A DNA stretch of 64,000 bases from Macrostomum lignano. Its lineage: Eukaryota. The notes beneath the pieces were generated by a model. The model was not told the origin of the DNA. It saw only the letters and a program-made list of their open reading frames with translations, and made no database searches. Where the stretch lies: the NCBI GenBank assembly GCA_002269645.1, contig NIVC01002856.1:62001-126000 (forward strand). The letters are read 5' to 3'. Positions 21,800-61,429 of this stretch are shown here, piece after piece (the stretch's first letter is position 1; each line of letters opens with the position of its first letter). A program made the position numbers and the translations under genes.

Positions 21800-21955
21800 G
21801 TCAGGGCCGATGTACACCCTGTGTGAGCGTGTGCATGAGTGCGTGCCTGAGTACAGTATTGGCGCGCTTGTATGCTCAGGAGCCAGCGGAATGGGCAGAA
21901 CTGCCGAAGGCGTTGCGCCAAAGTGTCCACAGCTTCTTGCAATTTTTTTGTACAG
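21800..21955 (-). mobile_element. Dispersed repeat family copy (same family as 835-995)
   Basis: Reverse complement contains ctcctgagcatacaagcgcgccaatactgtactcaggcacgcactcatgcacacgctcacacagggtgtaca, nearly matching 41610-41685 (+). Confidence 0.6.
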
Positions 21956-36158: not shown

Positions 36159-36454
36159 GAATCGGTGACGTCTGCATTCGCTTTTCCATAATTTTTTAGC
36201 CTACATAACTGGAAACTACCCCGGTATGAGAATTAGACTCGTTTTGACACTTGAAACATGTTATTTTTTCTTTGAATCTGCCATATTCTGTAATGAAATT
36301 GCTTTGTTTGAAAGCAAGTCAATTCTTTCAGCTAAATTTCAAGATATCAGGAGAGAAAATATTATTTTGACCGAAAACGTCAACATGTGGATGGTTTCAC
36401 ATTTTTCTTCTCTTCCGAACTTTAGGAAGGGCCAATTTGAAAACTATGATGCTT

Positions 36455-38365: not shown

Positions 38366-39611
38366 ATGATATTAGATATAATAATTTATAATATTTATGA
38401 TATAATAAATATTTTTCAAACGAATAACTACTACTTTAAACAAATATAATTTTGTAAAATTATTCCGCTTAAAATATACGATCGTATACTCAGTCACTTA
38501 GGTGGTATTTTCTTTCAGCGCAAAATGATCATGAGGCTTCTTTGTTGGAGTGAACTCTTTAGCCCTTTGAAGAGTGCGTGTGCACCAAAGATGAAGAAAA
38601 GGAAAGGATTGCCAAGGGCTATGTAATGTAGGGATATACCTACCTTCCTGCAGTCTTACTGGAACTAATTTTGTAGATGTGAACTTTAGGTGCCGCTTCT
38701 TGGGATTATCTGCGAAATGTCTTACACTGTTTGAGCTGAGTTGCAAAAACTACAGTTTGCATTAGTGGTATTTCCCTGAAAGTACTGGTGCCTGGAAAAT
38801 CAGCCGTGACCGGAGAGAGCCATGATAGCAGCCGGGATGTCTCTTTGCGAAAGGCTTATTAGAAGCTTCCGGAGCTGATTAGAGGGTTGAGGGACAGCGC
38901 CTTTGGACTGCCTGCCGGTAGAAAATTTCGCCCAGATTGAGAGATGTTGGGTCTTGATCTACGGCCCAACGGAGGATCCAGTGGCGCCCTTTGATTACCA
39001 CGCGCCCGGGCACTCATTTAAGGGTGATTTAGTCTGTGAATCCCTGTTGAATTGTAAATAAAAAAGATGTACCGGCCAATGACGCTAGTGACGAGAAACT
39101 CCTGCGGCGCAGGAGCTGATGGCAAGGACTACGACTGTATCGGCTCTACTATGACGTTTTCTCGACATACGATTGAAAATGTCTTTCGGTCGTTAGACTC
39201 CGTGATTTTGTGCCGAATATGTATTTCTAATTTCGTGACATTCGAGTCTAAATTTAGCGTGATGATGATTATGAATTTCTTCAACCTGGAAATTCCAGAA
39301 GAGCAGAGGTGCATTTTTTGTCTCGCCAGGTGTGCACAAGAGGAGGTGTATAAATTCAAAGCGACAGTTAATTCTGCAAATAGCTGTGGATAGCCTAAAA
39401 ATAGCCCCATGATGTCTTGGCAGCAATGCCAAAGTACGCACAAACGATAGAATATTTATATACTGTCTTCTCTTCTGTCCGTCTGTCTCATTTTACAAGG
39501 AAACGCCATGGACTAACGGGGGATTTGCAAGCCTAGCTCAATATATTATAATTGATGTCTTCATTGCTCCCGGAGTCTCCTATTAGATTCAGCCTTAACT
39601 CGCACGCCGAT

Positions 39612-42149
39612 ATGCCAAAAGACCCGATCGACGCCTGGCTGCTGGACCGGCTGCACAGCGGCGATTTCGCCGATCTGCGATGGTTCAACCAGCAGGAGGG
39701 CCAGTTCCGAGTCGACTGGCCGCACGGCAAGTTGAAGGCCTTCAACAGCGAAGAGGCCGCCCGTCAGAGCATCTTTGCTGCCTGGGCTCGGTACAGAGGC
39801 GCTTGTGAGTCTGACTGGCCGTTTAGCGGGTTTAACTCGGGAATAATAATAAACAATAATAACTGATTACACCTGCCCTAATGGCCACATGTGCAACCGA
39901 CAGCTCAGCCGCAGCTATTGCGCGGCACATCTGAAGGCTGCGTACGGCTGTTCAGTCCAAGGACTGGGGGGGGGGGTGGGTCGCCACACAGACCCTTAAT
40001 TACCCCAGCTAATGCTGGCACCCATTTAACAGCTGGGTGAACTGAAGCAATGCAGAGTTAAGTGTCTTGCTCAAGGACACAAATTGTTCCAGTGGGATCG
40101 GGAATCGAACCCCCGACCTTCAAGTCGCAAGTCCGACGCTCTGACCACTAGGCTACAACCCCCTAACACGGGAACAAGGACCACTAAAAGCTACCGTTTA
40201 TCTGGACGTAACACTCGCGTTCGATGGAAAAATATTGGAAGGCTTGAAAATGCTTCTGTTGTTCCACTAATAAATTGTCAATACCCCCTTCAAGACTTTC
40301 AATATGCATAAAAACCTGATGTGTGTTTGACTAAATGGGTCGATCTACTATTTTTCTATAATTTTTTTTGCTAACACCTTTTAAGCGAAGTTGAGCCTCC
40401 TAATATGCTTCCATAGAACGCGAAAGTCATGGCGGCAACGGTAACTTTGGGCGGTTCTTGAATTAGGGAACATCTTCCCATTGGTACTGAAATCGATTGG
40501 TGCTGAATTTGTTACACTAAACTCAAAAAGAATTTATATTAGTTATCTGTTCTTAGGCTCTTATCTCACCCCATGCCGACAGGCAGGTAGAAACAATCAT
40601 CAGAGAATTTGCATCCGCTTTTTTACTAGCAACAGTTTTACTAGCAATCAGGTTTAGTTTCCTAGGGTACTGAGTAAGGTGACAGTTCCCATAGCCAGAA
40701 CTCACAGCAGGCTACAGCATCTCTGGCCTCATCGCCCAATCGTAATTTACAGGGTCAGTGTCTTGGGGGTCGGGTTTCAGTGGGATCAATCGAACGACAC
40801 GAAAAGCCCCATGTTAAGTTGCATACACGAACAAACCTTAAATCAATGAAATCTCGCGTGGAATCAAACCCTGAGCGATTCTTCGAGAGTGAACTCCTCG
40901 AAGATCGCAGAAGCCGCCATTGCGAGCTCCTCTTTTGCTGGCTAGGGGCGGGCACAGCCCAAAGGCCCGTCCTGGTTTCAGCCTGGGAAGTAGTAACTGT
41001 CTCGGGTTCTATGCTTGGCATGAACTATTAACACCCAGCTGCTCTTTCTCATTGAATCAGCCTGTCCGTTACTTACTGACCTGGTTGATGGGAGCTCAAA
41101 TCGTGCTGAAAGCCTTCCTTCCTAGAGATCTAACCTTCGTCGCCTGTGAAGAGCCTGGAATTAAAAAAATCTCAAATCTCTGAGGTCAAGTTGTGACGCA
41201 CCCGTGGCATCTTCACCGATTTCTGTACTTTCGGAACTATAACAGTCTAAACAACACGAGAGCCCGTGAGGGAAATTCCAGTGCATAGAGTGACTTGAAA
41301 TTTCAGCTGTTGCAAAAGTTTTATGACATCGCCTACTAACGAGTAGCGAGAAGAGAAAGCAAAGCGACGCCACTTTAACCGTGTCTACGGTCAAGTCCTC
41401 CAGCTCAGTGTGACTAATGCAGGCTAACAATTATTAACGACTAAGAAACCGGTCGCTAAACTAATGCGAGTTTCGCATCTCACTTTTCGGCATTCATATT
41501 AAAGGTCACAGAGTGAATTTCTTTCACAGAGGATTTCAGAAAGAGTTTGCAGGAGGGCTGCGAGCACTCTGGCGCAGCGCCTTCAGCGACATCGTCCCAC
41601 AACCAGCGCTGGCTCCTGAGCACATACAAGCGCGCCAATGCTGTACACAGGCCCGCACTCATACACGCTCACACAGGGTGTACAGGTCTAACTTAGAAAA
41701 AAGGTTGGCTCTCATGTCTGTGAATCTCACGACAACCCCTGGTCAATTTTCAAGCTCAAATAAATGCGGCCACCAGGGGTCGTGGTGCGAGAGTCAGATG
41801 CGTTTGCCATTGAGTTTCTCTGCCCTTAGCCTAATGTGATACAGTTTTTTAAGCACGACCATGTCCATAATAGTAAGCACTTTAATATTACAATCTGCAG
41901 CTCAATAAATGAATAATATCTCAAACCTACTGCTCACCAAACTCAGGCGCCTCCGGTCACAAGCGAAGCTACTCGGTCCTGAAGCAGACTTTCCGCTGCG
42001 CGCTGAACGGCAACCGGCGCGTCGAGTTTTGCCCGGCCGAGAGCGGCGCCGCCTTCCGTGTCTTCCGGTTCGTCGGCAACAGCAGATTCGACTCCGGCAC
42101 GGGCCTGACCATGGAGTTCGAAGACTTCCTCCGGGGATTGGTGGAGTGA
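39612..42149 (+). CDS. IRF: Interferon regulatory factor (IRF-B), DNA-binding-domain-only protein of about 131 aa
   Basis: Exon 39612-39804 reads MPKDPIDAWLLDRLHSGDFADLRWFNQQEGQFRVDWPHGK...IFAAWARYRG. Exon 41947-42149 reads SYSVLKQTFRCALNGN...AFRVFRF...FEDFLRGLVE*. The phase-1 GT/AG junction fits. Confidence 0.88.
39870..40160 (+). mobile_element. CORE/MIR-like SINE (or L2-type 3' end) in the IRF-B intron
   Basis: cccatttaacagctgggtgaactgaagcaatgcagagttaagtgtcttgctcaaggacac followed by gggaatcgaacc...ctgaccactaggctac resembles MIR/CORE-SINE core and tail sequence (recalled consensus, not searched). Confidence 0.55.
41530..41690 (+). mobile_element. Dispersed repeat family copy in the IRF-B intron
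   Basis: High local similarity to the 21800-21955 (-) copy. Confidence 0.6.
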
Positions 42150-43724
42150 TGACTCAGCCAAATGTGAATAAACTTCCGAGTGACCCCTGCCTATCGAATA
42201 TTGCTGAAAAATTGATAAAACTTGCATGCTCATGGTTGTGAAGATCATTGCAACTTGTTAGCATCAACCATCACTTGTTAGCAAGGGGATCAACAAGAAT
42301 CTCATGAACACCAGAGCAAATGGCGACAACGATATCCATGAGAATCTCAGTTTTTAGATTTTGTTTCCGACCAGTCCTCTACCGGATAATGCCATAGCAA
42401 GTGCTAGGACTAGGACTAACAAGTACAAGTTGCTAAAGATTTTCAATTTACACGTTTTTATTACTTGCCATTGCCCCGTCTATAAATATAAGTTTAAGTT
42501 CAATTTACAGTTTGAACTGAATGAACTTCACCAAACTTTACTCCATACTCCAGACCAGGAGACATGTTTTGCATGGATTCTCTAGCACACTTCAAACTCA
42601 TTGAACTACTCGTATTTCACATGGAAGTGTTTGTGAATTCTTCTATGTCTCAAATAAACAGCAAAGAGGTGCATTTCACCTCTTGTCGTTCGATGCTGCG
42701 AGAAAAGACTGTGGGCCCGTTCTATAAAGCCATCGTAAGATAAGATCGTTCTTAGCTCCTATCTCCGCCGTGTAAAAGTTCCGACGTACGATCGAACTTA
42801 AGCTACGACAGCTTTATACTACGACCCCTGTTTCTCTTCAAGGCTACTCCAATAGCGAGTGCATTAGCAGCTCAAAGGATCAATCAGTGGCCTCAAGGTG
42901 GGGATTAAATTCGAAGATGGGATCACCTGCGCACGGGATCCGGGTTGCATGAGCAGTTGCTTGTTCAGCCGTCTCCGCGGGAACAAGAAATTCTCAATGG
43001 ATTCTGACCTCAACAATTCTCTTTGGTTTGGGAAACTCTTCAAACAAACAGCAGAATTCATCATCTTCCCTTTTCTTCCCGCCCCATCCATTTGGTCTAA
43101 TGAATCAGGCGGGATGTCGGTAATGTTTCAGGCCTGCTCAGACTCGGCTCCTGATCAAATTAATTCTGACACCATATCGACCTTTGAGCAACATTGAATC
43201 GAACTGCTTCTTGGCTTTTTCGTTTCATAAAGTTTTCTGTTGCAGAAACATCTCTACTGATCGTGACCCGAGACTAAGAGAGATCTTCGCGAATCTTTAT
43301 TTTTTCGGATATTCTCTACTGAGATCATTTCCGGAGGAAATCTCTGAGCGGAGACGATATTTCGTCTTCAACTTTACGACAAATTTAATGCCTTTTCAAG
43401 TTGGTAAAAGCTGCCAGAGTTTATGGCTGAGCTCTGCTCGGTAGCGCGCGGTGAAAAATGGAGTCAAAAGTCGAACTACGAGTAAATGAAAAGCTTCGCT
43501 TCGGCCAAGCTAAAATTAAAGGGAGCGGGGGAAACTTCAATAAAAATTTTAACCGCGTGTGTATCTCGGGGGGGGGGGTTCGTCACGCTGACGATTCAAT
43601 GAATTCAGATTTCGTTGGCGCCTCAGAAGAATGCTTTGCATCGAACTGGTTTTTATTGAGGATAAAAAACTGGATAATGAGGTCATTTAAAGCATTCGAT
43701 CTTCTCAAAGGAATCGCAACAGTC

Positions 43725-44082
43725 AGGGATTCTAGCTTAAGTGTCAGGGATTCCAGCTTGAGTGTCAGAGATTCCAATTTGAGTGTCAGAGGCTCCAATT
43801 CGAGTGTCAGGATTTCAATTAGGGTGTCAGGATTTCAATTAGGGTGTCAGGATTTCAATTAGAGTGTTAGGAATTCAATTAGAGTGTCAGGAATTCAATT
43901 AGAGTGTCAGGATTTTAATAAAGTATCAGGATTTCAAATCGAGTGTCAGAGATTCCAGTTTTAGTGTCAGGGGTTCGATTTTGAGTGTCAGAGATTCCAG
44001 CTTGAGTGTCAGGGATTCCAGCTTGAGTGTCAGGGATTCCAGATTGAGTGTCAGGGATTCCAGCTTGAGTGTCAGGGATTCT
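43725..44082. repeat. Mixed 21/19-bp minisatellite (gagtgtcagggattccagctt / agagtgtcaggatttcaatt)
   Basis: Direct periodicity, with a 19-bp block in the middle of 21-bp units. Confidence 0.85.
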
Positions 44083-44389
44083 GACACCCAAGCAGTTGCC
44101 CCCCCCCCAAGCAGTTGCTTGTAAGTTCTGATTCGTTTTGGCCACTGCGGGCCAATAGAGCACTCGATGCGAACTGTATGCTATCTACCGCAGTAGTCAA
44201 GAACAAGAGGACTGGCATTGTGCGGCACTTTTTGAAAAATAGCTTTCAAATTTTCCAGGTAGCACGGAAAACCGATACCAGAGAAAGGTGAGTCGAAAGT
44301 GAAATAAAATACCCAATATTTATGCATTCTGTGTTTCTGGGACGTTATAAATCTAGCTACTTCCTGAGCACCTGCTTCCCTCAGTGCTG

Positions 44390-44545
44390 GCAGTTCCGCC
44401 TTCATCCTCACCGCCGGTTCCGCCTTCATCCTCACCGCCGGTTCCGCCTTCATCCTCACCGCCGGTTCCGCTTTCATCCTCACCGCCGGTTCCGCCTTCA
44501 TCCTCACTGCTGGTTCCGCCTTCATCCTCACCGCCAGTTCCGCCC
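44390..44545. repeat. 24-bp minisatellite (ccgccggttccgccttcatcctca)n immediately upstream of the GPCR ATG
   Basis: About 6 copies read directly. Confidence 0.9.
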
Positions 44546-44565
44546 TCACCGTTGCAGCTCCGACA

Positions 44566-46569
44566 ATGCCATCAGAGAAAAACGTCACCTTCAACGATGC
44601 CAGCCAAGCGGCCATCTGGACGGCTTTCTCAGCCCTGATGATCGTATCAATCGTTGGCAACGGCGTTGTGGTCTGGATAATCCTGGCGCACGCCCAGATG
44701 CGCAGCGTGACGAACATCTTCCTGCTCAACCTGAGCCTGTCGGACATTCTGCTCTGCGCCCTGCAGGTGGTGCCGAACGTCTGCTACGCGATCGTCAGCT
44801 CGTGGAAGTTCGGCCTGTTTTACTGCCGACTGTCTAATTTTATCACAACCTTCTCCATTTCTCTGTCTGTTTTCACCTTTATGGCTATCGCTATTGAGAG
44901 GTAAGCTTCAATAAAACCTGTGAGTATTGAATTTCATTTTAGCATTCTGAATTCGGAGCTGGGCAGAGCAGCTCAGCCGGGTTCGATTCTGCACTCGGGG
45001 GTCGTATTAAAAAAGTGGCCTGAGGGCTTGTCGTATGATTCTTGTCTACGAAGACGGAGTGGCCTCTGAGTCACCGAGCGTACATGTCTGACAAAGAGAA
45101 AGTCAAGGCCGTGGCGTTGTACACCTGTGAGTGTGCTTGGGTACGTATCCGTGGGCGTGCTCAAGGCGTCAGCGGGTAGGCCAGGACTGGCTGATGAGGG
45201 CCGACTGTCGCATTGGATTTGCTGATGCGACCGAAGCCCTCCTACGAATTGACTTACTACTCTTAGCATCCTGCCTTAAGCCCAGTACTAAAAGCTAACG
45301 CAGTCGCTCATTCTAATCACTATCAAGGTACATGGTAATCGTCTATCCACTGCGCCCCCGGCCAAGACGTGGCACCATCATATCCAGCCTGGTTTTCATC
45401 TGGGCATTCAGCACCCTCACAGCTGCTCCGGTGGCTTGGAACAGCAACATTGTGGACGAGCTGACAGGCTCCGTGTCCTGCAAGATGGAGGAAAACATGA
45501 CAAGGACGTGAGCAGATTCTATTTTAAATTAAGATTCTACTCATATTTTAAACATCTGTTGAATGTTTTGTTAACTACAGATAAGTACATTAGGAATACG
45601 TATCAAACCGTCCAGGTACAACTGGATTCTGCTGACGCTGCAGTGCCTGGTGCCCCTGATTGTGGTCGGATTCACCTACATTGTCATCGCTATCCGGCTA
45701 TGGAAGCAGCAGCCAATTGGCGAGCAGGTGTCAACACATCAGGCTGAGAATATCCGCGCCAAGAGAAAGGTGGTTTAGGCAAAGTTAATGAACACTTACA
45801 AGCATAAAAATTGCCAACAAGATGCAAAATGCACAGACTTTAAAGAGTGAAAAAAGCAGTGACACTTGACTTTAGAATTTAGAAATTTTAAAGGTGCTGT
45901 CGATAAAACAAAAAGCCATCGAATTCCTCGCCTCGCAGATTGTAAAGATGATGATCATCGTAGTGCTGATCTTCGCACTCTGCTGGATCCCCTACCAGTT
46001 GATGTTCTTCACCGTGAAGGAGGCTTGGCAGTTCATCATTCTGTACTTCATAGCCGTGTGCAGTACTGTGCCCAACCCGTTTATCTACTGCAAGATGAAT
46101 CACAAGTAAGCCAATCACCCAAACATGTAGGGCGTATCAGCCTGGGGCACTAAACTACGAAGCAATTAAAAATGACTAGGTTGGTCATAAGCTCGAATGG
46201 TTTCTCTGCAGCTTTCGCCTCGGTTTCAAGCGGGCCTTCGCCTGGTGCCCGTGCGTCACAATCGACATGGAGAAGTACAAACTGCTAAGACAGCGCCGGC
46301 ACACCAACTTCGCCTACAGTTTGACTAAGAGCGAATCGCGAGCGCCTCATCATCAGTCTCTGTTTCTGGCCCAGCGCCAGCACCAGCCGCAGCACCAGCT
46401 GCAGCAAAGCCTGTTCGCTCGCGAGCGCTCCCGTAGAATGCAGTGGTCGAAGAATCTCGGCACCAACTGTCCGAACGAGGCGTTGGCCAATTCGACTGCC
46501 TCGCTGTCCGTCATGGTGATGGTTGAAGCGCCCGCTGCTGCCGGCGCCGCCTCTGGAAGTCGCGTGTGA
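44566..46569 (+). CDS. TACR: Rhodopsin-family neuropeptide GPCR, tachykinin-receptor-like
   Basis: Exons 44566-44900, 45328-45507, 45616-45769, 45939-46105 and 46212-46569 are in phase. Motifs: GNGVVVWIILAHAQMRSVTNIFLLNLS, AIERYMVIVYPL, RAKRKIVKMM, CWIPY, NPFIY and FRLGFKRAFAWCP. Confidence 0.88.
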
Positions 46570-48634: not shown

Positions 48635-51600
48635 ATGACGGACCCTCCTGAGGCAGGCGAGGCCGTGCATCCTTCGTCGGCCATTGACGAAGCCGCCGTG
48701 GAGTCCTGGCTCGAAAGCCATCCAGAGTTCTTTGAGGACTACTTCTATCGAAAGGCCACTCGCCGCCTGGTGGACACCTGGGTTTATCGACGGGTCCGCA
48801 CGGCAACAACTACGAGCTCGCACGGGGCAAGTTTCAGTTCGTTTGACTGGCACAGCATCCCGGAAACGCTAGCCCAGCAGCAGAACCAGCAGCAGCAGCC
48901 AGCCGGGGGAGACTCCGCCATCCAGGAGGAGATCGAAAGCAGCGTGAACGTATCTCGGTCCACATCCTGCAGTAGCAACGTCATCCGTAAAGTGTCCAGC
49001 GAGTTCGTCTACCTGGATCGAAACCAGAGCTCATCGCCGCTATTGACGAGATTTACGGACGGCTCAGCCTCCTTTATTATTGACTCCATGGTGGCGTCAC
49101 CCACGCTGCCGCGAACACCGAGCGGCCTGGGAACGAGCAACAAACATCAGCAGCAATCTCAGCAGCAGCCTCTTCCACAGCCAGCGCAGCCGACTGCTGA
49201 GCAGCAGCAAGCGCCAGCGGCGGCATCGTCTGGCGCACAGGGGCTGCGTGCTTTCGCCGAGGAGGGCATGCTGCGCGAGCTGGTACTGGACATTTTCCAC
49301 GAACTGGACGTGGCCACCCTCTGCCACAAGATCCTGCGCAATGTCTGCCTGCTGATAGGCGCAGATAGGTGCTCGCTATTTTTGGTGGAATCGGCACCAG
49401 GTCGGTCTCAACTGGAGCTGGTCAGCAATCTCTTCGACGTCACTGCGGACAGCTGTTTGGAAACTATCTTGGCCAACCACAGCTCCATCCGCATCCCCAT
49501 CGGTCAGGGCATTGTGGGCAGCGTCGCTCTCACTGGCGAGCCAGTGCGCATTGCGGACGCGTACCAGGTAAGCCGCATTCCAGATAAGGGAGAATTTGAA
49601 AATGTGAGTGGACCATTTGTAGCGCTGAGGATAGTGCGTCAGAGACAGCCTCTCATTGTGTTCGCCACTCACTTACTCACAAATCACCAGTTTCTGGATT
49701 AGATTTCGAGGGGGAAAGACCTGGGATCTTTGCGATTTAGAGCTTTGGGCCCGCTCATGAAGCCCTATCAGCAAGTGTACACTGCCTGAGGTTGAGAAAG
49801 TGTGGCAAGTGTAACATTAAACGTGAGCGTGCGCCTGTGTGCGTAGCCTTGTTCTTGTGTGTGCTCAGCGACTACCATGAAAGTCTTCACAGAAGGATCT
49901 ACTATTTAGGAATATTCGTCAGTTTAATTTGGCATTTCTCTGTCGTTACGCAGAGAGACCAATGTCGAGAGTAAACTACCCAGTTACCTGCCCAGATATT
50001 ACTTGGACGATCCACTGAGCCGAGTAACAGTGCACACTGAGGCCAGAATCTTCCTCCCTTAGAAACTTCTCGATAATGAAGAGAAAGCAACTGAGAGAAA
50101 TTTTCCACATTGCCAAACGAAGCCCAGCTGGTTTGACAGGAAGTAAAGGAGGTTTGCCGTGATGAATGCTGCTTTCTCCAAAGCCTTTGCAGCCTGGCAG
50201 CAGGTTTCTGATTAATTTAATTTCTGATTAATTTAATTTCGGCTCAAACGTTCAGCCTTACAGCCGTAGCTTGGGGATTCTCTCAAACATTTCTATCCCA
50301 CAAGACTTTGTTCTTATCTATTTACTTGTCCATATTCATTACTTTGAACCAACTAACCATCTTCAATCTCTTTTATTTTTCTTCTTCCTACCAACCTTGG
50401 CCTAATCGACCGTTAACTTTCTCCCGGCACATTGTCACCGCTCCTATTCGTCAAAAGCAGATTTCCCTGGAGGAGCGCTCTCACTATAGCTAATTAGCTT
50501 AGCTGTCTGGCTGATTTCCCGCAGGTAAGCTTGGAAACTGCGAGCTAATTGCATTTAGATCGCCGCAATCTGAGCTAAGGCAAGAAAAGAACCCCCTCAC
50601 ATGAGTCTAGCGGTAATGTGTACATACCAGTTTTATACGATCTTAGATATGCCTAAGAGCACTAGGTCCATGATGCACATTTATTCATAAAGACTCTGAA
50701 ACAGTGTGAAGCAGTCCATTTAGGTTGAAGGACGAAATTATGACTCATTATATACGGTAGTGTAACGGTGTTGATATTTAGTTGTTCGTAAATAATATGG
50801 TATGATTAATGTCTCCTTAGTATTGTATTAATTTATCTACTATTCATTAGCGAATTTTACAAGTTCTTCAATATGTACGCTTACAATTTGTTTTACGGTA
50901 ATCTTTCACAGAAATATTGTACTATTTAAAAGACTGTTAAATCGCTATTTTGCGCTCGGCGCGTGCTTTTCGGTTAGTCCGCCGCGTGGTGCCCGTCCGC
51001 AATAGCTTACCACCAAGAATTTAACGGCAATGAAGTTTATCCTGTCTGTTCAAATATATAGGCCGTAAGAGAGGGTCTTAAGAGGGTCTTAAGAGAGGGC
51101 CGTAAGAGAGGGTAGGAGACGGTCTCTCACTGCGAAGACTCAATTTATTACATGGCCGTTAGTACCGAACTTAGAAGGGTCTCGTCACAGTAGCTACGAG
51201 TATGCAGCTACAATATTAGAGAAAATTTACCTTTTTTATCATTATCGAGCCCTACAATCTAGCTCAAGATGCGTTGCTTGCGAAGAAACTTACCTGTAAG
51301 TTGCACCACCAATCGTGGACCAAAGTATCCAGCTTCGACTTCGTGCGCGGTCACTTTAGTTGGAGGATTCGTTAACAAAAAAGACTACGAGTGTGTACAT
51401 GTCGGACGATGAGAAAATCAGGGCTGTTGTACACCCCGAAGAATACCCTCTGCGATTGAAAAGCAACAAAAACAAACCGCAACCCCCCCATTCGTTAGGA
51501 CGAGCGTTTCAACGCCGAGATAGACAAGCAGACCGGCTATCGGACCAAGAGCGTCCTGTGCCTGCCCGTGAAGGACCACACTGGCGCAGTGATCGGGGTG

Positions 51601-54600
51601 ACTCAGGCCGTGAACAAAAGGGACGGCGGCGTGTTCAGCGAGACTGACGAGAAGGTAATGTCGCTTTTCATTAGGCAAGGAAACAAACAGAATTGATGGC
51701 AATGATTCTACACTGCACTCCTTTCAGACATTCGAAACCTTTCTCACCTTCTGCGGCATTGGAATTCGAAACGCCAAACTGTACAAGCAGTCGCAACTGG
51801 AGACCAAGAGAAATCAGGTTTAATTTTTTTGGAATGATTTGGTTGTGCTTTCTACCTTCGTTAAGGATGGTAATAGATCCAAAATTTATCCATTCTTCAT
51901 TGAGAATGCGGGAAATATTTTCTACTCATCAGTAATTTCTCAAGTAAAATGACAGGCTGTTTTAACTCAATTCCCAATCCTTTTGGACTTTTGGTCAGCA
52001 AAATATAGAAATTGAGCGGTTATCCAGAATCTACCATGCATTTACTATCCGTGCGTTGAGAATGGATCTCTGACTGTTTGACAGGAATATAGTTTGCACA
52101 GCAATCAGACTATAAAGTTAGTGAAGAGTCCTAAACTTTTGATAAGAAAATATACTGTATTTTTTTAATTATCAAAAAAAATTATCAAATTTCTTAAATT
52201 TTTGACAGTTTACGTACCTTTTTGAGTTCATCAAATTCATTCTGAACAAAAGTTAACGAACTCTTTCTATTAAACACCTTTGAATCTCGCCCTTAAACCT
52301 CCTACGCAGGTACTTCTAGACATGGTTCGCATAATATCGGAGCAGCAGGACAACCTTGATCCCCTGGTCAGGAAGATAATGCACTACATGCAGTTGATAA
52401 CAACCTGCAGGTGGTGCCAAATTCTGCTAATCGACGATCCAACGTCAGTTGAGGTGCGTGCAAAGGATCGCAAGATATTTTTGGAGTAAAAAAGTTTAAA
52501 AAAAACCTTGCCAACTGTAGTGCATGTGGGGAAACTGTTCCTTGCAAACTGACATACAACAGAAAAACTACGCTAGGGTTTTAGATTAAGTTCGAGCTAC
52601 GCCTCACCACATACTGAAGAATTTCCTAACGTTGTCCTGACTGCAGGGCATGTTCGATCACGCGTTCGAGCTGCGCTTCGAGGACGACGACGCAAACTCA
52701 GCGACAGTGCACGACGGAGAAAGCCGACAGCCAGCGGCTCCTGTTGTCACCGACTATTGCAGGTTGGGCCGGTTTTGTGCTATTCAGCTAAGCCATTAAA
52801 AACGAAAGTTAATTTGCTCTACTGGCTTCGCTTTGACTTCTGTTTTACAATTTCAGGATGCTACTTAACAGCGAACTCATAAGTCTTGTATGCGACACTG
52901 GAGAGGTTAGTAGACCTATTTTTTTATTGCTGATTTTTTATTTTCTATCTTTCAATGGTATTATATCCTTACGTTGTTTATTTACTTTGGAATTTTAGCC
53001 GCTCAACATTTCGAATCCCAGGGAAGACATGCGGTTGACAGTAAGTTCACCGTCACTGAACCTGGACGTAGTGACTGCTAGTGCGCCATCTGCGTGATGT
53101 GTAGCCGGAATTAATCAAAAATTTTCATTTCCTTTACAAGAGGGGCCAAAGTGGTAACGCGTCCGACATCAAAGTTTTCGGATGACAACCATTTCACATT
53201 AATTTGGGCTTCCGCACGGAATGCTGGCCTGAGGCCTGTGTGACTTTCAGGGCACACGCACGGGAGGGATCCTTGCAAATATTGATTCATAAGCTTTCCC
53301 TGATTTATCGTCAAGCAGTAATTCGAATCAAGTTATGATACGCCACAGTATTCGGATTCTCGGTTGTGCTCAGGGTCAGTCGACTTTGTATACTAATTAA
53401 AATCCTCGTTAGGAGCTGGAGCGCCTGAGCATCAGCGCACTGCTCTGCTTGCCAATCAAGAACGCCCAGTCGCGCGTTGCCGGCCTCTGCCTGTTGATGA
53501 ACAAGTCTGACGGCGGCGCCTTCACGTCCGGCGACCAGCAGCTGGCGGAGGCCTTCGCCCTGTTCTGCGGCCTCGGCATTCACAACACGCGGATGTTCGA
53601 ACGAGCCGAGGTGGCCAAACGCCGGCAGCAAGTGGCGCTGGAGGTGCTCAGCTATCACGCAGTCGCTTCCAGTGAGGACGCGCAAAAGTTGGCCAAGTGT
53701 CTGATACCGTCGTCGAGGTTCTTGGGCATCAACGAGTTTTCCTTCTCGGATCTGGCGTGAGCAGCTTTTCTATTGCTATGCTCAAAAACGGGGAATGAGA
53801 TTGATGAATGACGTACAATAACTACTAGCTCGTATTTATTTGTATGTGGATGCGGCAGTTCTAAATTTTCGACATTACGCATGCAAAAACTACACCCTCA
53901 TACGTTTTTTACGTTTCCTGCAGTTATAGATGGAAAATGAAGTAACCATCACCTAGATTGCACATTGCCCAATTTTTACGGCTTCAAAACGCCTCGTACT
54001 CTTGGGTATAATTAGGTATGAGTATATGGACTATGAAAGTGCCAGCTTGTACTAAACTGTGAAAATGAAACTTGGGGAATATGAAGCTCGGGATATTATG
54101 TGCCCTGGAAAAAAAGCACCTTGGAAAATTGCTCCAAAAAAGCTTTTTTATCTTTCATCCATCTACTATGCTAAATGTTGAAACATAAAACATTGTCTAA
54201 CCGAACCGGATAGAATGAGCGACGAGGAAACGCTGATAAGTGTGATCAAAATGTTCGAAGACACCGGCCTGTTCTCGGCCTTCAAGTTAAACTACGCCAG
54301 CTTCTGCCGTTGGATTCTGTCCGTGAAGAAAAACTACCGGGCGGTCACCTACCACAATTGGCGGCACGCGCTGAACGTGACGCAGTGCATGTTCGCCATG
54401 CTGCGGGTGAGCCGAAATAAGCATAATTCTTTTAATTAACGGCCCATAGTTCAGACTCATTTCAGCTCATAAGCACTAGCAAGAAGCGGTAGGGTAGAAT
54501 TTATGACTGCCTTGTAAGATCAATAAGTGCACCTAAAAAGTGTCTAAAATACAGAGAGGGCAATATCTTGATGGCGGTGACCTGTGGCAAGGAAACGGTT

Positions 54601-57600
54601 ATCGTCACTTCGCTCTCCCCAAAAAGTTTGCATCTATAATTTTAGTACCTATAAGTTTTTGACGTTAAGACAGAGCAGCTCAGCGTCAAAACGAAAATTT
54701 GTGTTGTCTTGCAATGAGTGCCTTGAGGGCCTACATAACAGGATACGAGCTATCCGTGTGCCTGCATGTGCTCAGGTGTCAGCGGAATGAGTAGAATTGC
54801 CTCAGTGCTGGTTGTGAGATGATGTCACCGAAGGAATTGCGCCAGGGTGCCCCACAGCCTTCCTGAAATTATTTTTAATATTATGCTTTGATGCTGATTC
54901 TGTACCATAAAACCCAGCGAATCAGTCTGCTCAAATAGCCTCAATAGCATAATCTTTCGACTATGTCCGAGGCTAATGCTTAACTTCGTTATCAATGGAT
55001 TCAAGTGCTTGCTCTATAGCATTTTGCCGCTGTATTTACTCCAGGAAAAGAATACGAGCATATCGCTGCTGCACGACAATGCATTTAGTTACAGAGAAAT
55101 CCTACATCTTATACATTGTTATTACATTCGTGCCATGTGAAGAACCGAGCCTTGCATGCAGTTTGTCGTACAATCAGCAAAAAATCGAGTCTTCTCGTCA
55201 GGCTTGCACGCAAATCTTTGCTAGTATAATCACGACTTGATTTGATCCCTATTGGAGGCTGCGGGATCCCTTCGGTGACGGATCGGATAGGCAGAGCTGG
55301 GTGCTCATGCTCTTATCAGACAATCCTCAGCAGCACAAGACGCTGCTTGCCTGCAACCGAATGCAACTGCAGCTTAGCAGTGCACGGGGATCATATTTTC
55401 CTCAAATACTGAGCCACGCAGAATTGCCTTTGCTTCCTCTTCAGGAATAAAACAGTGGAGTAAAGAGGCTTATATATTCTGATAAGAGCAATTGAATAGA
55501 AGGTAATATGGAAATATACACGTGACTGAGCTGCGGTAAACTTTAGGTAGAAGAGCATTGAGACAGTTCGACAAAGCAAGCAGTAGGAAACGCATGGCAG
55601 GGTACGCCTTCCAACTCCGTTTCGACCCGTGTGGCACTCCTGAATTGAGCTTACCTTTCTCTAAACAAGCTTCTTCAATTAAACGAGCTTTCCTCCTTAA
55701 ACAAGCTTCCCTACTTGAACGAGCTTCCCTACTTTAATAAGATTCTTGCGTTAAAAGAGCTCTCTAACTTGAATTAGCTTCCCATCACCTTCATCGGACT
55801 TTTCTTCCTGGACCAGCTGCCTCCCACGCTAATAAAGCTTCTCCTGTCTACCTAAATAAGATGGCTTCCTTCTTTCTAACATTCTAAAAATGTATTTCCA
55901 TGCACAAATTTTTTCTTTTATTCGCATCAATTTCATTTCAGACATCGCCAGAGCTCAGAGGCCTCAATCGTCTGGACAAGCTGGCCCTGCTAGTTGCTTC
56001 AATCTGCCACGACCTGGACCATCGAGGCACAGACAACAAATTTCAACGGCTGACCCTGTCCCCGCTCGCCCAGCTATACTCGTCATCAATGCTGGAGAGG
56101 CACCATTTCAACCACACACTGCTCTAGAAGGGCACCGAGGGTGAAAAAAATGTACAGAAGAAAATTTTTGAATTTTTGCACTCAGTGGACTGGCCCTTAT
56201 ACCTGGGTGTAATATAAAAAAAATCTGCCAATTTGCTTCCAGAAAATTGGCCTTTTCTGCTTTTTCTGCAACAGTCTGCTTTTAGTTGTCAAAAATCTGG
56301 AAATTAAAAATGTTGTGCTCAATTTCTTGACTTTTTGGATACGTGGCATTGATCAAAATGTCACTACACAGTAATGACCTCTTTGATGACTGCTATAAGC
56401 TGCCAGGATGTTTCAGCCATAGACAATTTAATAAATTCCATACCTGATGATATTTTCATTATGTACGCTCATAATTCACAAGAAATTAGGAAAATGCGCA
56501 AATATTAGCCTTATTGCTTTCAAAAAGTTGGCTCTGCCATTTTGCGAAAATTCCGCATTTACATGTATTTCAAACAAAGCTATAAATAAAAAAAGTAGGT
56601 ATATTATCATTATTAATTTGCAAATACTTTTGCTTAAACTGAATGCAAAAAAATAAAGGAAGCATTTTAAAGAAATAGTATTAGATGATTTAACAGAATT
56701 AGAAGGTAAAGTTAATATAGGTGAATTGAAAGAATATAAAAGCATTGTCATTTTTTCATTGCATGTGGCTACCAAGGTGACGCAAGAATTCATCACATAT
56801 GTCTCGAGTTGTATATGATAGTGCATCGCAGCAGCCGTTGTGGATACTCTGGATGCGTTAAAGCTGTCCGAAAGCCTCTTGTCCACAGCTGGCCAAAGTC
56901 ACTATGGACGGACTCGCTCGCCTGTTCGGACCAAAAGCCAAGGCCGCGATATCGAGGCTGCTTCCCATTCTCCATGTGACGGTTTTGGTGCTCAATTTCT
57001 GCCTGAAGAAACTCTGGAACATGTGCTAGTAGCGCATGTACCTTTGGACTAATGTTGATGTCCAAGCTCATAAAAGCGCTGGAAAATTCCGAAATGGCTT
57101 GCTCAAATCCAGGCAGCAGCTCATTGCCAAAGCACAGTCGCTTTACATTGCTGAAGCAGCGCATAGAATGGAGAACTGGCATCGAACTGAAAGCACAATG
57201 GTCGGTCAGGATCTGCTCAAGGATATCGACTCCTTCAAGTAGCTTGCTGCATTCATTACCATTGAATGTTCCACCATGCTGCTTTGAACGGCAGATGTTC
57301 AGCTGTCTTGTCCAGGCTGCTGCAGTCACTACGCCACCAGTGTCTGTCGTCAAGCGTGAATCAAGCTCATCATACAGCCTATTAACGATTCCTAACATTA
57401 GATGGAGCTCCATTGGTGGGATCAGCTGTAGAACAGGAACGCTGTCATCTGCATCCAATAGAGGTTGGTGAACACAGTTTTTGAAGCATGCAGCAGAAAT
57501 GCTTTGACATCTGCTTTTTTGATCATTTGCCTGCTGGAACTCTGTTGCTAATTGTCGAATCCGACCAAGTGTGCGCGAGTTTGCTCCCGAGTTTTGCTGC

Positions 57601-60600
57601 ACGAACTTTGACTTGGGCTGCTCGCACCATGGGCAGGGATGCGTGCTGCTACAGGCCTGTAGCCCTAGGATCAAATTCGCCAACTTCATGTCTACGGCAC
57701 AGATAAATGTTACAGCTTCAAGTCGCAAAAGTGCAAGAACTTTCTTCAGGTTGTAATAGCTTTCGCAAACATTTTCAACTATGGCTAGCAAGATGAGCTT
57801 CTTAACTCCGCTGGCTTGTGGCTCAGAAGATGCTGCACGTTTCTCTACCTGTGCTTCTGGAAGAGAAACATCAATGATGTTTGCGCAGACTTTTAAAAAA
57901 CCTCCGCCTCCATCGATTCCGATCTTTACTACAGACTCAGCGGGATTGATCTGGCGGTTCTCCATTATTCGAGACAGCAGCAGACCAACATCTGGGCAGT
58001 ACGCAACGGTGCGCAGCTCTTGTTGGTCTCCCTTAATTTGCAGCGGAAGCTGTGCAACTTGGAAAAACTCTTGAAGAATGATGTCAATCTCTCGAAGTTT
58101 TTGCTCAAGATTTGGCTCAAATGCATTGCGCCCTTGCCATTCGCGTATCTTCTGCGCTGCCTGCTTAGTTTGCCGCTGGCTTAGCCTTAGATCCCGCTGA
58201 AATTGGCTGAACTGCTCTGCAGAAATGGTATCCGCTTCCCTACTATTCAAAGATTGACGTTTCTGCTGCCCAAAACTTACTGTTAAAGATCTTCCACGAG
58301 TTGCCAGCTGGACATTCCTGCTTTCAAAGGGTCCGCTAGAAGCTTCAACCGTCTTCAGTATGTCTGAAGCCTGGATCTCAGCCCCACGCTTGTCCATTAA
58401 GAGCTGCTCAGACAGATTGGCACGCCTTTGTGTAATCGTGCAAGCGTGGCTCTTTCCTCTGCTAATTTTAGAATGGCAGCGTCCGCAAATGGTGACCGGA
58501 TTGGCAGACGGCAGTGGGTCCAAACTATCAATCGGCGGGCGCCCGATGGGATGCGGTCGATGCTTAGCCGTTCCTAATCCTTGACCAATAGGATTTTCGC
58601 GTGCAATCACACAGATTTTGCACTCACATCGAGGACTTTGTCGCGTTAGTGGTGCTAGCAAGACTGACTTCATATTTAAAGCTGCTGGTAGACAATCTCG
58701 GGTCTTAATTCCAACGTCCACATCGTGCAATAAATGTCGGCACCTTGAGCAGATGGCAGTAGGTAGACGAGCATCTTCAAGATCAGCTTCAAACTGCAGC
58801 AGACGACAGATGCGATCAGAGATTTTCTCAGTGATTGGAGAACATGAGCTACCTTTTTTGAAGCACAGTAGGCAAACTTTGAGCCTGTTTTCATCGTGAG
58901 ACTTGTGGCTAGCCATTTTGGTGGGTTGATTTATCCATGAACCAAAAACGTATATATATATATATATACACAATATTACTTACGCGACTCACCTGGAGTA
59001 CACTTCACTTGGCTACTCAACAAATTGAAATTCTGATGCAATAAATACACTAGCAGTAGGAAGAGTTGAAATAAGAAGTAGAAAATGTACATCTGTACGT
59101 GGATTATGGGTCCAATTGATTTTAATTTGTCTACGAGCGTATTCTGTTGTATCAGTCATTGTACTCAATCAGTCAAATAACAAATTTTCCTTTAAACTGA
59201 TTGTATACATTGATCAAATTATGGTTATGACTCAGCTCCAAGCTATATATTGCCAAATGCATGCAAAATTATAATGTTCAGCATTTGTGACCCTCAAGCC
59301 AACTTTTATATTGCGCAATTCCCCTAAATTCACGAATTTACATTTGAAAATATTATCACGTATCCAAAGAGTCAAGAAATTGAGCACAACATTTTTAATT
59401 TCCAGATTTTTGACAACTAAAAGCAGACTGTTGCAGAAAAAGCAGAAAAGGCCAATTTTCTGGAAACAAATTGGCAGATTTTTTTAATATTACACCCTGG
59501 TATAAGGGCCAGTCCACTGAGTGCAAAAATGCAAAAATTTTCTTCTGTACATTTTTTCACCCTCGGTGCCCTTCTAGAGCAGTGTGACCAGTGCATCATG
59601 CTGCTCTCCATCAACGGCTGCGACATCCTGTCGTCACTGTCCCAGTCGCAGTACGAGCGCTGCATTGCCACCATAGAGAAGTGCATTCTAGCTACAGATT
59701 TACAGAAGCACATGGCCGCCAGGTGAAATTGTTGATGCAAACTTTGTCAACGAGTATCAGAACCAGTGATTCTAAATCAATTTTGATAAACATTGCAGAA
59801 TTGTGAATTTTTGCAATTCCGTTCTGTTGCAGGAAAGTTCTACAGCAGCTCGTCACCGACAGAGCATTCAACTGGTCGGAGACGGCCCACCAGGACCTGC
59901 TGCTGGGACTGTTGATGACCGCAGCGGATCTCAGCGCCATCACGAAGCCCTGGTCGGTGCAAAAAAAGGTCGCCTTTCTGGTGGCCAGCGAGTTCTACGA
60001 GCAGGGCGACAGGGAGAAGCAGGAGCTGCACCTGCAGCCTGATGTAAGTTTTGGATTGAAGCTTTGGGCTGGAGCCGAGGTCAGAGTGGCTCAGCGGCAA
60101 ACGCGTCTGAACTTCGAATCACGAACAGTTGAAAATTCAATTCTTACTGGTTCTAGATGTTTAAAAGTTACACTTTTAACATCCTATATACTAAATTTCA
60201 ACACTAGTAAGAAATGAGGTAGCTGGATTTGATGGCCAAACTTCATCTTGAAATGAATGAATTATGAATGAAAGAGGAGCAAAGTACAGCACCCGTATCA
60301 AATATCCCGGGTTTGATTCCAACATTTGTGGGACTTCTGCATTCTCCGCTGATGAGGGCCAGAATACAACATCTGCGTGACAATTAGAGAGTCGGGGGGA
60401 TATGTTTACGTGCTGTGTGACTGCTCGGGTGTAACCAGCGAACTTCATTTCTGTTGGGTCCTGAAAGTCCTGATCGAAAAGCTGGGCAGCAATCTCTCAA
60501 CTTGTGCCTTTTCAGGATCAGAAGGATCGCGCCAAGCAGCAGAAGCTGCCAAAGATGCAGGTGGATTTCATCGATTTTGTCTGCCTGCCCGTCTACACTG

Positions 60601-61429
60601 TGAGTCAGTCATCAGTAGTTTGAATCGGGCATACCGAATGGGATAAACTCCGGTCGGTCAGCGGGTGCGGCAACTCTGGCCCACAGGTCACGTACGGCTT
60701 CAATAGCAATCTGGTTCACTCAAGATTGGTGTCTTATCTCAACTCTCTTTTCTCTCTAATTTCCTCTCCCCTCTCCTCTTCTTTCTCTCCACTCTCCACC
60801 CCTCTTCTCTTCTCCTCTTCTCTCCTCTGTGTGGTCCGCAGTCACGCGCTAGATTCCAAATCTGTCCCTCGCTAGATTCCAAATCTGTCCCTCGCTAGAT
60901 TCCAAATCTGTCCCTCGCTAGATTCCAAATCTGTCCCTCGCTAGATTCCAAATCTGTCCCTCGCTAGATTCCAAATCTGTCCCTCGCTAGATTCCAAATC
61001 TGTCCCTTAAGTTAAAAAGTTTGCCGACTCCTGAACTGAACTCAAAATTGATGCTATAGTTGATCAACAGTTAAAAGAGTGATTATGACAATCAAGGCTG
61101 ACTGAAAATGCATACAAAACACATAAGGGATTCTTGGAATTCTTTTTTCTGTAGATTACGGATACGAGGTAGAAACTCCTGTATATGTACCTGGTTACAT
61201 TAATTCCGACATCTCTGCTGCGGCGTACAGATTGCAATCGTTGAATACATCTAGAGTACATCTAGTAGAAAAAAATTATTCGAACTATACGCTACTACAA
61301 GTAGATTGCCGGCTCATATTATTTCAATTGCAATTTCAGCTGCTGTGCGAAATCTGCAGCGAACTGCACGAACTGCGCAACGGCTGCCTGAGCAATCGAG
61401 CCCAGTGGGAGTCGCTGACCGGGCAGTGA
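48635..61429 (+). CDS. GAF-GAF cyclic-nucleotide phosphodiesterase (PDE5/PDE11-like); this copy is disrupted by a transposon insertion
   Basis: Exons 48635-49567, 51499-51654, 51728-51817, 52310-52453, 52647-52762, 52857-52905, 52999-53040, 53413-53756, 54214-54406 (YHNWRHA), 55942-56114+59591-59722 (HDLDHRGTDN; split), 59833-60043 (ADLSAITKPW), 60516-60599 (MQVDFID) and 61340-61429. All phases fit once the insertion is removed. Confidence 0.92.
51117..51154 (+). ncRNA. Flatworm spliced-leader (SL) exon-like sequence within a PDE intron
   Basis: agacggtctctcactgcgaagactcaatttattacatg differs at 2 positions from the Macrostomum lignano SL as I recall it (...AGACGGTCTCTTACTGCGAAGACTCAATTTATTGCATG) and ends in ATG like flatworm SLs. 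It is not followed by GT. Confidence 0.6.
54720..54875 (-). mobile_element. Dispersed repeat family copy in a PDE intron
   Basis: Reverse complement ggctgtgggcaccctggcgca...gacatcatctcacaaccagc...cctgagcac aligns by eye with 842-940. Confidence 0.55.
56115..59586 (-). mobile_element. Full-length Chapaev-type (CMC superfamily) DNA transposon, 3472 bp
   Basis: TIRs at 56115-56345 and 59357-59586 start CACACTGCTCTAGAAG and differ at about 6 positions. The 4-bp TSD ACCA lies at 56111-56114 and 59587-59590. One long internal ORF. Confidence 0.95.
56793..58916 (-). CDS. Chapaev-like DDE transposase, about 707 aa, uninterrupted
   Basis: ATG at 58916. The N-terminus is Cys/His-rich (H-x7-CLLC, PTAICSRC, CECKIC, CGRC...HAC). 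The core has KIGIDGGGGFLK, AVDMKL...HPCPWC, PPMELHLMLG and SEQASESVHSDF. Confidence 0.9.
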   Translation of the reverse strand: MASHKSHDENRLKVCLLCFKKGSSCSPITEKISDRICRLLQFEADLEDARLPTAICSRCRHLLHDVDVGIKTRDCLPAALNMKSVLLAPLTRQSPRCECKICVIARENPIGQGLGTAKHRPHPIGRPPIDSLDPLPSANPVTICGRCHSKISRGKSHACTITQRRANLSEQLLMDKRGAEIQASDILKTVEASSGPFESRNVQLATRGRSLTVSFGQQKRQSLNSREADTISAEQFSQFQRDLRLSQRQTKQAAQKIREWQGRNAFEPNLEQKLREIDIILQEFFQVAQLPLQIKGDQQELRTVAYCPDVGLLLSRIMENRQINPAESVVKIGIDGGGGFLKVCANIIDVSLPEAQVEKRAASSEPQASGVKKLILLAIVENVCESYYNLKKVLALLRLEAVTFICAVDMKLANLILGLQACSSTHPCPWCEQPKSKFVQQNSGANSRTLGRIRQLATEFQQANDQKSRCQSISAACFKNCVHQPLLDADDSVPVLQLIPPMELHLMLGIVNRLYDELDSRLTTDTGGVVTAAAWTRQLNICRSKQHGGTFNGNECSKLLEGVDILEQILTDHCAFSSMPVLHSMRCFSNVKRLCFGNELLPGFEQAISEFSSAFMSLDINISPKVHALLAHVPEFLQAEIEHQNRHMENGKQPRYRGLGFWSEQASESVHSDFGQLWTRGFRTALTHPEYPQRLLRCTIIYNSRHM
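60849..61006. repeat. 23-bp tandem repeat (ctagattccaaatctgtccctcg)n, about 7 perfect copies, in the last PDE intron
   Basis: Direct periodicity. Confidence 0.93.

Follow-up and report, generated by a model that had tools for sequence, protein, structure and literature searches.

What has split the catalytic exon of a phosphodiesterase (PDE) gene in the flatworm Macrostomum lignano, and what does the split leave of that gene? The question is raised by a 64,000-nt stretch of contig NIVC01002856.1 (assembly GCA_002269645.1, positions 62,001 to 126,000 of the forward strand), here called the window and numbered from its first letter, which matches the contig at 100% identity over 25,366 bp. We consider it highly probable that an autonomous Chapaev-group transposon has recently jumped into exon 10 of a PDE11-like gene, in one of three copies of the locus in the genome of the inbred line DV1 (assembly Mlig_3_7), and that the resulting null allele is buffered. 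The event itself is ordinary: in a neopolyploid rich in repeats, a transposon has disrupted one of a redundant set of three gene copies.

The insertion in exon 10 and its empty sites

The insertion is a DNA transposon of 3,472 bp (window 56115-59586), internal to the 135-kb contig and oriented with its transposase antisense to the host PDE gene. Its terminal inverted repeats (TIRs), a left arm of 231 nt on the plus strand that begins 5'-CACACTG (56115-56345) and a right arm of 230 nt on the minus strand that ends CAGTGTG-3' (59357-59586), are 97.4% identical, with five mismatches and one indel of 1 nt. The terminal 29-mer occurs twice in the window, both times at an element end, against none expected by chance. 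ACCA lies directly outside both ends (56111-56114 and 59587-59590) as a target-site duplication (TSD) of 4 bp, and neither boundary can be shifted, not even by a single base. Between the TIRs a single-exon gene of 707 codons plus stop runs on the minus strand (56793-58916). By its sequence, 56115-59586 is a complete, apparently functional cut-and-paste transposon of the Chapaev group, distantly related to the V(D)J recombinase RAG1.

In silico removal of 56115-59586 together with one ACCA yields ...SSSMLERHHFNQCIMLLSINGCDIL... with the reading frame kept; the rejoined exon links ...LERHHFN to QCIMLLSING... and matches Pfam PDEase_I at E = 8.5e-33. The same site is empty, with a single ACCA, in two further contigs of the assembly, NIVC01000898.1 and NIVC01000899.1. 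A 40-nt string running from flank to flank through one ACCA is found exactly in both, and the alignments of the window to both stop at 56114 and 59587. Because filled and empty sites can be compared directly, the boundaries, the 4-bp duplication and the transposition are proved; filled and empty sites in one genome constitute direct evidence of recent Chapaev transposition. The original prediction, made from the letters alone, had described an open transposase, TIRs about 97% identical and a PDE frame restored exactly by excision with one ACCA copy, and had suggested looking for an empty site and an intact PDE elsewhere. The uninterrupted 707-aa frame, the measured identity, the in silico join and the two empty contigs agree with it on each point, and NIVC01000898.1 supplies the intact gene.

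The host gene, on the plus strand with 13 coding exons (48635-61426), is of the PDE5/6/11 type. It has the tandem GAF domains (GAF-A and GAF-B) followed by a PDEase_I catalytic domain that mark this type; Pfam matches are to GAF and PDEase_I, homologs carry GAF, GAF_2 and PDEase_I, and those relatives that have a name, about 42% identical, are called 'PDE11-like'. Exons 1-5 lie at 48635-49567, 51499-51654, 51728-51820, 52313-52453 and 52647-52763, exons 6-9 at 52858-52905, 52999-53040, 53413-53757 and 54215-54406, and exons 11-13 at 59834-60043, 60516-60599 and 61340-61426, with ends approximate to 1-2 nt. Exon 10 is split by the element into a 5' half (55942-56114, ...CHDLDHRGTDN...LERHHFN) and a 3' half (59591-59723, QCIMLLSING...ILATDLQKHMAAR). 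NIVC01000898.1 encodes PAA75171.1, an intact PDE of 918 aa, and NIVC01000899.1 encodes PAA75165.1; the M. lignano proteins found with the near-full-length concatenated PDE exons as query were 85-93% identical to it.

After in silico excision the 13 exons of the window encode a protein identical to PAA75171.1 at 918 of 918 residues, and the insertion is thus the sole coding lesion. With the element in place the frame reads HFN-HTLL and then meets a TAG at 56125-56127, within the left TIR, giving a product ...HFNHTLL*. This stop lies 3' of HDLDH (56008-56022) and 5' of ATDL, AADL and the glutamine of MQVDFIDF, encoded at 59.69, 59.92 and 60.56 kb. The GenBank model on the contig, BOX15_Mlig000681g2 (PAA54826.1, 750 aa), ends in ...LERHHFNHTLL with a coding sequence at window 48635-56127, and is a truncated PDE product, stopped at the element's TAG and lacking half of the catalytic domain. 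From its reading frame, the affected copy is predicted to yield a protein with GAF-A, GAF-B and no more of the catalytic domain than its N-terminal half, and hence to be a catalytic null. A stop at 56125 between the HD metal ligands and the ADL and glutamine regions, a gene otherwise free of decay and a null allele had all been proposed beforehand and are upheld; further PDE lesions, which would have spoken for an old insertion, were looked for and none was found in the coding sequence. Excision would probably not bring the gene back, as the 4-bp duplication left behind shifts the frame.

The DV1 genome in this assembly is made up of three homeologous subgenomes, S, L1 and L2 (PMC10733133; see also PMC5704211, PMC5519732), and one filled plus two empty copies fit this picture. 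The insertion is younger than the divergence of the three locus copies. The suggestion that the loss may be buffered by extra genome copies is likewise supported, both by the two intact copies of the locus on other contigs and by the three-subgenome structure of DV1 (PMC10733133). On the host side, this is a clean, dated case in which, soon after genome duplication, one homeolog was knocked out by a transposon.

The transposase and the element ends

The transposase frame runs from an ATG at 58916 to a stop at 56795-56793 and has no intron; residues are counted from M1. It is the single long open reading frame (ORF) of the element, the others being 61-139 aa and mostly overlapping it, and no RAG2-like second gene accompanies it. 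A Pfam search returned only a sub-threshold zf-AD match at residues 15-66, and no Pfam transposase family was matched, so that the protein was classified through a family alignment, a profile search of the PDB, hhalign and a comparison of folds. Database searches gave 39 transposase relatives, the nearest of which, 46% identical, is also from M. lignano. In a 30-sequence alignment of the family, the window protein keeps 28 of the 28 invariant columns. The invariant residues include D335 (GIDGGGG), D409 (AVDMKLAN), C428/C431 (PCPWC) and L504-H505, and the nearly invariant H627/H632 (KVHALLAH) and E664/E668 (FWSEQASES) are kept as well. The predicted catalytic triad is D335, D409 and E668, while C428-x2-C431, L504-H505 and H627-x4-H632 form the C(2)C, LH and H(4)H motifs.

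Comparison of the family alignment with the Chapaev3 transposase Garfield_BM by hhalign gave a probability of 98.7% (E = 3e-16, 350 columns), and BLASTP against the same protein gave 2e-9. When the family profile was run against all PDB sequences, the matches were confined to RAG1 and the amphioxus RAG1-like protein, and were weak (E = 0.03-0.65). The alignment pairs D409 with the second catalytic Asp of RAG1, the CxxC and HxxxxH motifs with its zinc site and E668 with its final catalytic Glu, in W-A-S-E-G-N-E-S; these RAG1 counterparts are the residues that we take to hold those roles. An AlphaFold2 model of the transposase (mean predicted local distance difference test score 82.9, predicted template modelling score 0.66) gave 44 significant matches in Foldseek, all of them to RAG1, HzTransib or BbRAGL. 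RAG1 accounts for 42 (best 3.2e-11, template modelling score 0.54-0.61 normalised to RAG1), and HzTransib (6pqx) and BbRAGL follow at 1.2e-6 and 3.1e-6. The model therefore predicts a Asp-Asp-Glu (DDE) core fold of the RAG1/Transib type.

The N terminus bears a ligand pattern of H7; C14, C17, C56, C59; and C97, C99, C102. Weak Pfam zf-AD matches occur in 12 of the 30 family members, and the next-ranked Foldseek match is the ZAD of Pita (7pok), at a probability of 0.91 but E = 0.29. The N-terminal 'Chapa' domain of Chapaev transposases has been described as a two-zinc fold (ZFa+ZFb), similar to the RAG1 NZD and with a first finger resembling the Pita ZAD, and experimental validation of its function is lacking (bioRxiv 10.64898/2026.01.24.700457). 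Compared by description, the pattern seen here appears compatible with the published 'type I' arrangement. The nuclear magnetic resonance structure of the RAG1 NZD named in that preprint was absent among the Foldseek matches of the transposase model. About half of the family keeps a GRP tripeptide, which is located in a disordered region directly ahead of a C2HC finger and two helices. The superfamily is large, counting 10,973 cluster representatives when the cut-off is E <= 0.001 and 1,663 when it is E <= 1e-30. Besides, Pfam DUF1280 (PF06918, function unknown) matches 5 of the 30 family members (best 1.7e-6), and probably derives from the core of a Chapaev-type transposase.

The left end of the element resembles a recombination signal sequence (RSS) of the long-spacer RSS23 type or a Transib end (56115-56152, plus strand): the heptamer CACACTG (56115-56121) is followed by a 22-nt spacer and the nonamer-like AAAAAAATG (56144-56152). 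The right end, on the minus strand within 59357-59586, has its heptamer at 59580-59586, a 22-nt spacer and an A6 tract (a T-run at 59552-59557 on the plus strand), and both ends are of the long-spacer type. The corresponding published consensus sequences are CACAATG, 23 nt and AAAAAAATC for Transib and CACAGTG, 22-23 nt and ACAAAAACC for RSS23 (PMC1131882).

In the mechanism that we propose, by homology with RAG1 and Transib, a transposase dimer would recognise this bipartite end, composed of CAC heptamer, about 22 nt and A7 'nonamer', with the conserved, AT-hook-like GRP segment and the helices behind it reading the A7 tract. Nicking would take place at the heptamer border; the element would be set free, probably via hairpins on the flanking DNA, and then integrated through D335, D409 and E668 with a stagger of 4 bp. 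Cut-and-paste transposition of the 3,472-bp element duplicated the target ACCA in exon 10, and the left TIR brings in the in-frame TAG, 11 nt inside the insertion. We know of no transposition assay or biochemical test of any Chapaev element.

Mobility, class and age of the insertion

Several observations weigh against the reading given above, or against parts of it. First, we compared the window over 38635-64000 with the two empty-site contigs, labelled L018 and L019 in this comparison, and the copy nearest to the transposon-bearing haplotype switches along the locus. Upstream, the window is closer to L018 (99.7% identity over 44.6-56.1 kb) than to L019 (96% over 43.7-51.1 kb); downstream of the site the order is reversed, with 99.4% identity to L019 and 94.5-98.4% to L018. 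Such a mosaic is what gene conversion or recombination among the homeologs would leave, or else a chimeric assembly. The filled and empty copies could accordingly be homeologs or haplotypes, and the pattern could in part be assembly chimerism; since the nearest copy changes along the locus, the carrier could be subgenome S, L1 or L2, and gene conversion or local chimerism is possible. Second, no further copy of the element was present in the window or in about 130 kb of other M. lignano loci that were fetched. Third, its transposase has no gene model on the contig, whereas two sister families have multi-locus models (Mlig010790g22, Mlig012838g9). Finally, the hairpin step and the nonamer reading are carried over from RAG and Transib, and present-day mobility of the element or its family, an active family having been part of the original prediction, is conjectural.

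The last of these observations bears on whether the element still moves. The family might now be silent, for instance through repression by PIWI-interacting RNAs (piRNAs), with the insertion left over from a brief burst in the recent past and the element immobile. We regard this as the less probable state of affairs, yet one with a substantial share of the odds. It would account for a transposase that is unannotated while its sister families are annotated, and an active PIWI/piRNA system has been described in M. lignano (PMC4604429). The exact transposase protein likewise has no record in the public gene index. Conversely, all catalytic and zinc-binding residues are kept, both ends are complete, and a missing annotation is weak evidence.

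The second issue is the class of the element. Chapaev transposons are said to go back to Kapitonov and Jurka in 2007, and the CMC group to Yuan and Wessler in 2011. The hallmarks described for Chapaev are a TSD of 3-4 bp, CAC/GTG termini and the C(2)C, LH and H(4)H motifs (PMC4079192). Here, the ACCA flanks and the two empty sites define a 4-bp TSD, the termini read CACACTG...CAGTGTG, the DDE transposase carries the three motifs, and homology to an accepted Chapaev transposase is seen with Garfield_BM. These features sustain the Chapaev assignment made at the outset. The element resembles the canonical Chapaev elements with 4-bp TSDs (CMC) in its duplication, its CAC...GTG termini, its DDE transposase of about 700 aa with the same motifs, a putative N-terminal multi-cysteine zinc domain and its animal host. 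It differs from the known families in that it appears to be a distinct one, whose best database relative is 46% identical, and in its long TIRs (231 nt). With Chapaev3 (Garfield_BM of Bombyx mori; PMC4079192) it shares a homologous catalytic core and the order of the motifs. However, Chapaev3 has a 3-bp TSD of TWA and a transposase of 556 aa in two exons, while this element duplicates 4 bp without evident target consensus and encodes its 707 aa, about 22% identical, in one exon. CACTA/EnSpm and Mirage elements are marked by TSDs of 3 bp and 2 bp, respectively, and by CACTA termini, and neither agrees with the 4-bp TSD and CACAC terminus found here.

An assignment to Transib proper rather than Chapaev is in our judgement very unlikely, even though the resemblance is extensive. 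The transposase has a RAG1-core-like fold that matches the Helicoverpa zea Transib (6pqx, 1.2e-6), and the ends, CACACTG, 22 nt and AAAAAAATG, share with Transib a CAC heptamer, a spacer of about 22-23 nt and an A-rich nonamer, in our case with an A7 tract. In addition, Kapitonov and Koonin placed Chapaev inside a broad Transib superfamily (PMC4411706). In contrast, Transib duplicates 5 bp and not 4, it is reported to be without the N-terminal ZAD/NZD-like (Chapa) zinc domain predicted here (bioRxiv 10.64898/2026.01.24.700457), and the similarity to Chapaev3 (3e-16) is far stronger than that to RAG1 (0.03). Because of its 4-bp TSD and apparent N-terminal zinc domain the element is not Transib in the narrow sense. 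Nor is it a RAG-type element, since the second gene is absent. RAG1 and the RAG1-like protein of ProtoRAG (6cg0, 4wwx, 6b40) are nevertheless its best structural matches (E = 3e-11, about 580-690 aligned columns). RAG1 and the transposase have in common the DDE positions, the zinc site made up of CxxC and HxxxxH, W-x-S-E-x-x-E-S and RSS-like ends, and the putative N-terminal zinc domain resembles that described for the RAG1 NZD. On the other side stand an identity of about 14%, the lack of a RAG2-like gene, the 4-bp against a 5-bp TSD, and two ends of the 23-spacer type with no 12/23 asymmetry, in what is a mobile element and not a domesticated recombinase. The element is a Chapaev-group member with a RAG1/Transib-type transposase.

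As for age, the insertion is recent because its TSD is perfect, neither the gene nor the transposase has another lesion and its flanks are near-identical to those of the empty copies. The filled haplotype differs from NIVC01000899.1 by one substitution in 2 kb and five in 8 kb around the site, and from NIVC01000898.1 by about 0.4-1%. The original prediction had also called the insertion very recent, in part from the identity of the TIRs; its recency stands, while that basis for dating it does not. Divergence between the TIRs was tried as an age estimate and rejected. In a sister family of M. lignano that encodes the transposase P0016, left/right mismatches at positions 77, 227 and 228 are found in five of five copies and at 197 in four of five. 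Because they are present in near-identical copies, these mismatches are inherited with the element, and left/right TIR identity is no age clock.

That the insertion is instead an old one, in a decaying pseudogene copy made redundant by genome duplication, is highly improbable. The gene is triplicated and one copy would be free to decay. Nevertheless, the coding sequence is identical at all 918 positions, the TSD is perfect and the transposase ORF is intact. The single substitution in 2 kb against one empty copy has to be set beside SNP (single-nucleotide polymorphism) divergence of 1.4-2.4% between the subgenomes genome-wide, where heterozygosity within a subgenome is negligible (PMC10733133).

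Equally hard to credit is that the allele is not null at all, the element being taken out of the transcript through cryptic splice sites in the TIRs. This possibility is suggested by an older annotation, UniProt A0A1I8GIE2, in which 26 residues come from the left TIR (window 56129-56206) via predicted introns at 56082-56127 and 56207-59582; GT..AG pairs do occur at those positions and were used by the automatic gene model. The protein, however, would gain the 26 TIR residues in place of SSMLERHHFNQ and a Cys-Asp at the 3' junction, and the transcript-guided NCBI model ends at the TAG. The lost SSMLERHHFNQ presumably holds a conserved residue, namely the Glu in the second metal-binding motif. 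As A0A1I8GIE2 contains TIR-encoded residues, the insertion is visible in a second annotation set. Both A0A1I8GIE2 and PAA54826.1 are annotation artefacts of the insertion, which explains these two odd database proteins.

Least tenable is a misjoin of the element into the exon during assembly of a repeat-rich neopolyploid genome: chimeric scaffolds are reported to make up 36% of the Mlig_3_7 assembly length (PMC10733133) and the locus is mosaic, but a chimeric join would neither make a perfect duplication of a target found unduplicated in two contigs nor restore the frame to the base, and the element is internal to its contig and has left TIR residues in the older gene model.

RSS-like ends in sister families and other features of the window

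The bipartite layout of the ends is repeated in five of six related families: in its first ~40 nt the TIR has a heptamer that begins CA(C), then 21-23 unconserved nt, A7-9 and after it T/G. The M. lignano family encoding P0016 comprises five copies of 3,457 bp, 1-12 nt apart, with 231-nt TIRs that start CACGGTT and flanks of ATCT, TTGC, AACC, CTCG and TATA/AATA. TSDs of GTAT and AGCT were found for another M. lignano family and a marine-metagenome family, respectively, and a perfect 4-bp TSD with CAC/GTG termini occurs at six of the seven scorable sister-family sites. The closest relative, L001 (NIVC01000691.1, 3503-6870; transposase 46% identical, 216-nt TIRs at 99%), begins with CAGCGCG and not CAC, and has flanks of GTCT and TAGTCT without a clean TSD. 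It breaks with the 'invariable CAC' rule but keeps an A7 tract 21 nt from the heptamer.

From these sequences, Chapaev too has RSS-like bipartite ends. Families whose proteins are just 30-46% identical have an A7 tract some 22 nt away from the CAC terminus, which suggests that such an end is older than Transib and RAG. The GRP segment and the helices after it may read the A-tract, by analogy with the nonamer-binding domain of RAG1. A marine-metagenome family (L011-L016, encoding P0007; for L011-L013 the contig ends lie too near to define a TSD, and the outer TIR boundary of the family is not fixed) has a TIR without the A-rich tract and a transposase without GRP, and co-variation of the two is a possible lead from this single case. 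Taken together, a currently mobile Chapaev element with an RSS23-type signal at both ends, its A-tract being read by the GRP segment and following helices as by the RAG1 nonamer-binding domain, is a tentative proposal that we think more apt to fail than to hold. If true, heptamer/nonamer recognition and the NZD-type N-terminal zinc domain would each be older than the separation of Chapaev from Transib/RAG. It would, moreover, make the element the first Chapaev that is open to experiment, on which nick-hairpin chemistry and the role of the Chapa/NZD domain could be studied. Since transgenesis tools are at hand in this animal, an intact element whose ends are complete offers a practical starting point.

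Two smaller features of the window have related termini. A solitary RSS-like motif on the minus strand (21942-21977) reads CACAGTG, 21 nt and AAAAAAAT; its heptamer is a perfect RSS heptamer and 0.07 such motifs are expected by chance. No partner inverted repeat was found for it within 12-24 kb, and what is left here may be one end of a further Chapaev/Transib-type element. A unit of 187 bp at 14396-14582, similar to a miniature inverted-repeat transposable element, has 32-nt inverted repeats (91% complementary) and CAC...GTG termini, with no clear TSD.

Three further genes lie on the minus strand of the window: a Slo/BK potassium channel with RCK and BK_channel_a domains (5718-7963), a caspase (15122-15865) and a protein kinase (18836-19531). 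An open frame resembling an interferon-regulatory-factor (IRF) DNA-binding domain is found on the plus strand at 39552-39863 (Pfam IRF, 7.9e-11), and a second one, judged by eye only, at 34943-35236 on the same strand; IRF-like genes of flatworms could be of interest to comparative immunologists. A rhodopsin-family G protein-coupled receptor (GPCR) gene is encoded on the plus strand at 44368-46106. Just upstream of it lies a 21-nt tandem array of 17.5 copies (43722-44081), which aligns to L019 in many registers, and a 24-nt array of 6.5 copies (44393-44548) sits at the beginning of that gene's exon segment at 44368-44901, upstream of the 7tm_1 match. Finally, a large minisatellite at 36448-38368 consists of 69 copies of a 28-nt unit (GATGCCTTTTCCACACCATCTCCGATAA) with 91% match, and the strong negative GC skew at 36-38 kb is due to it.

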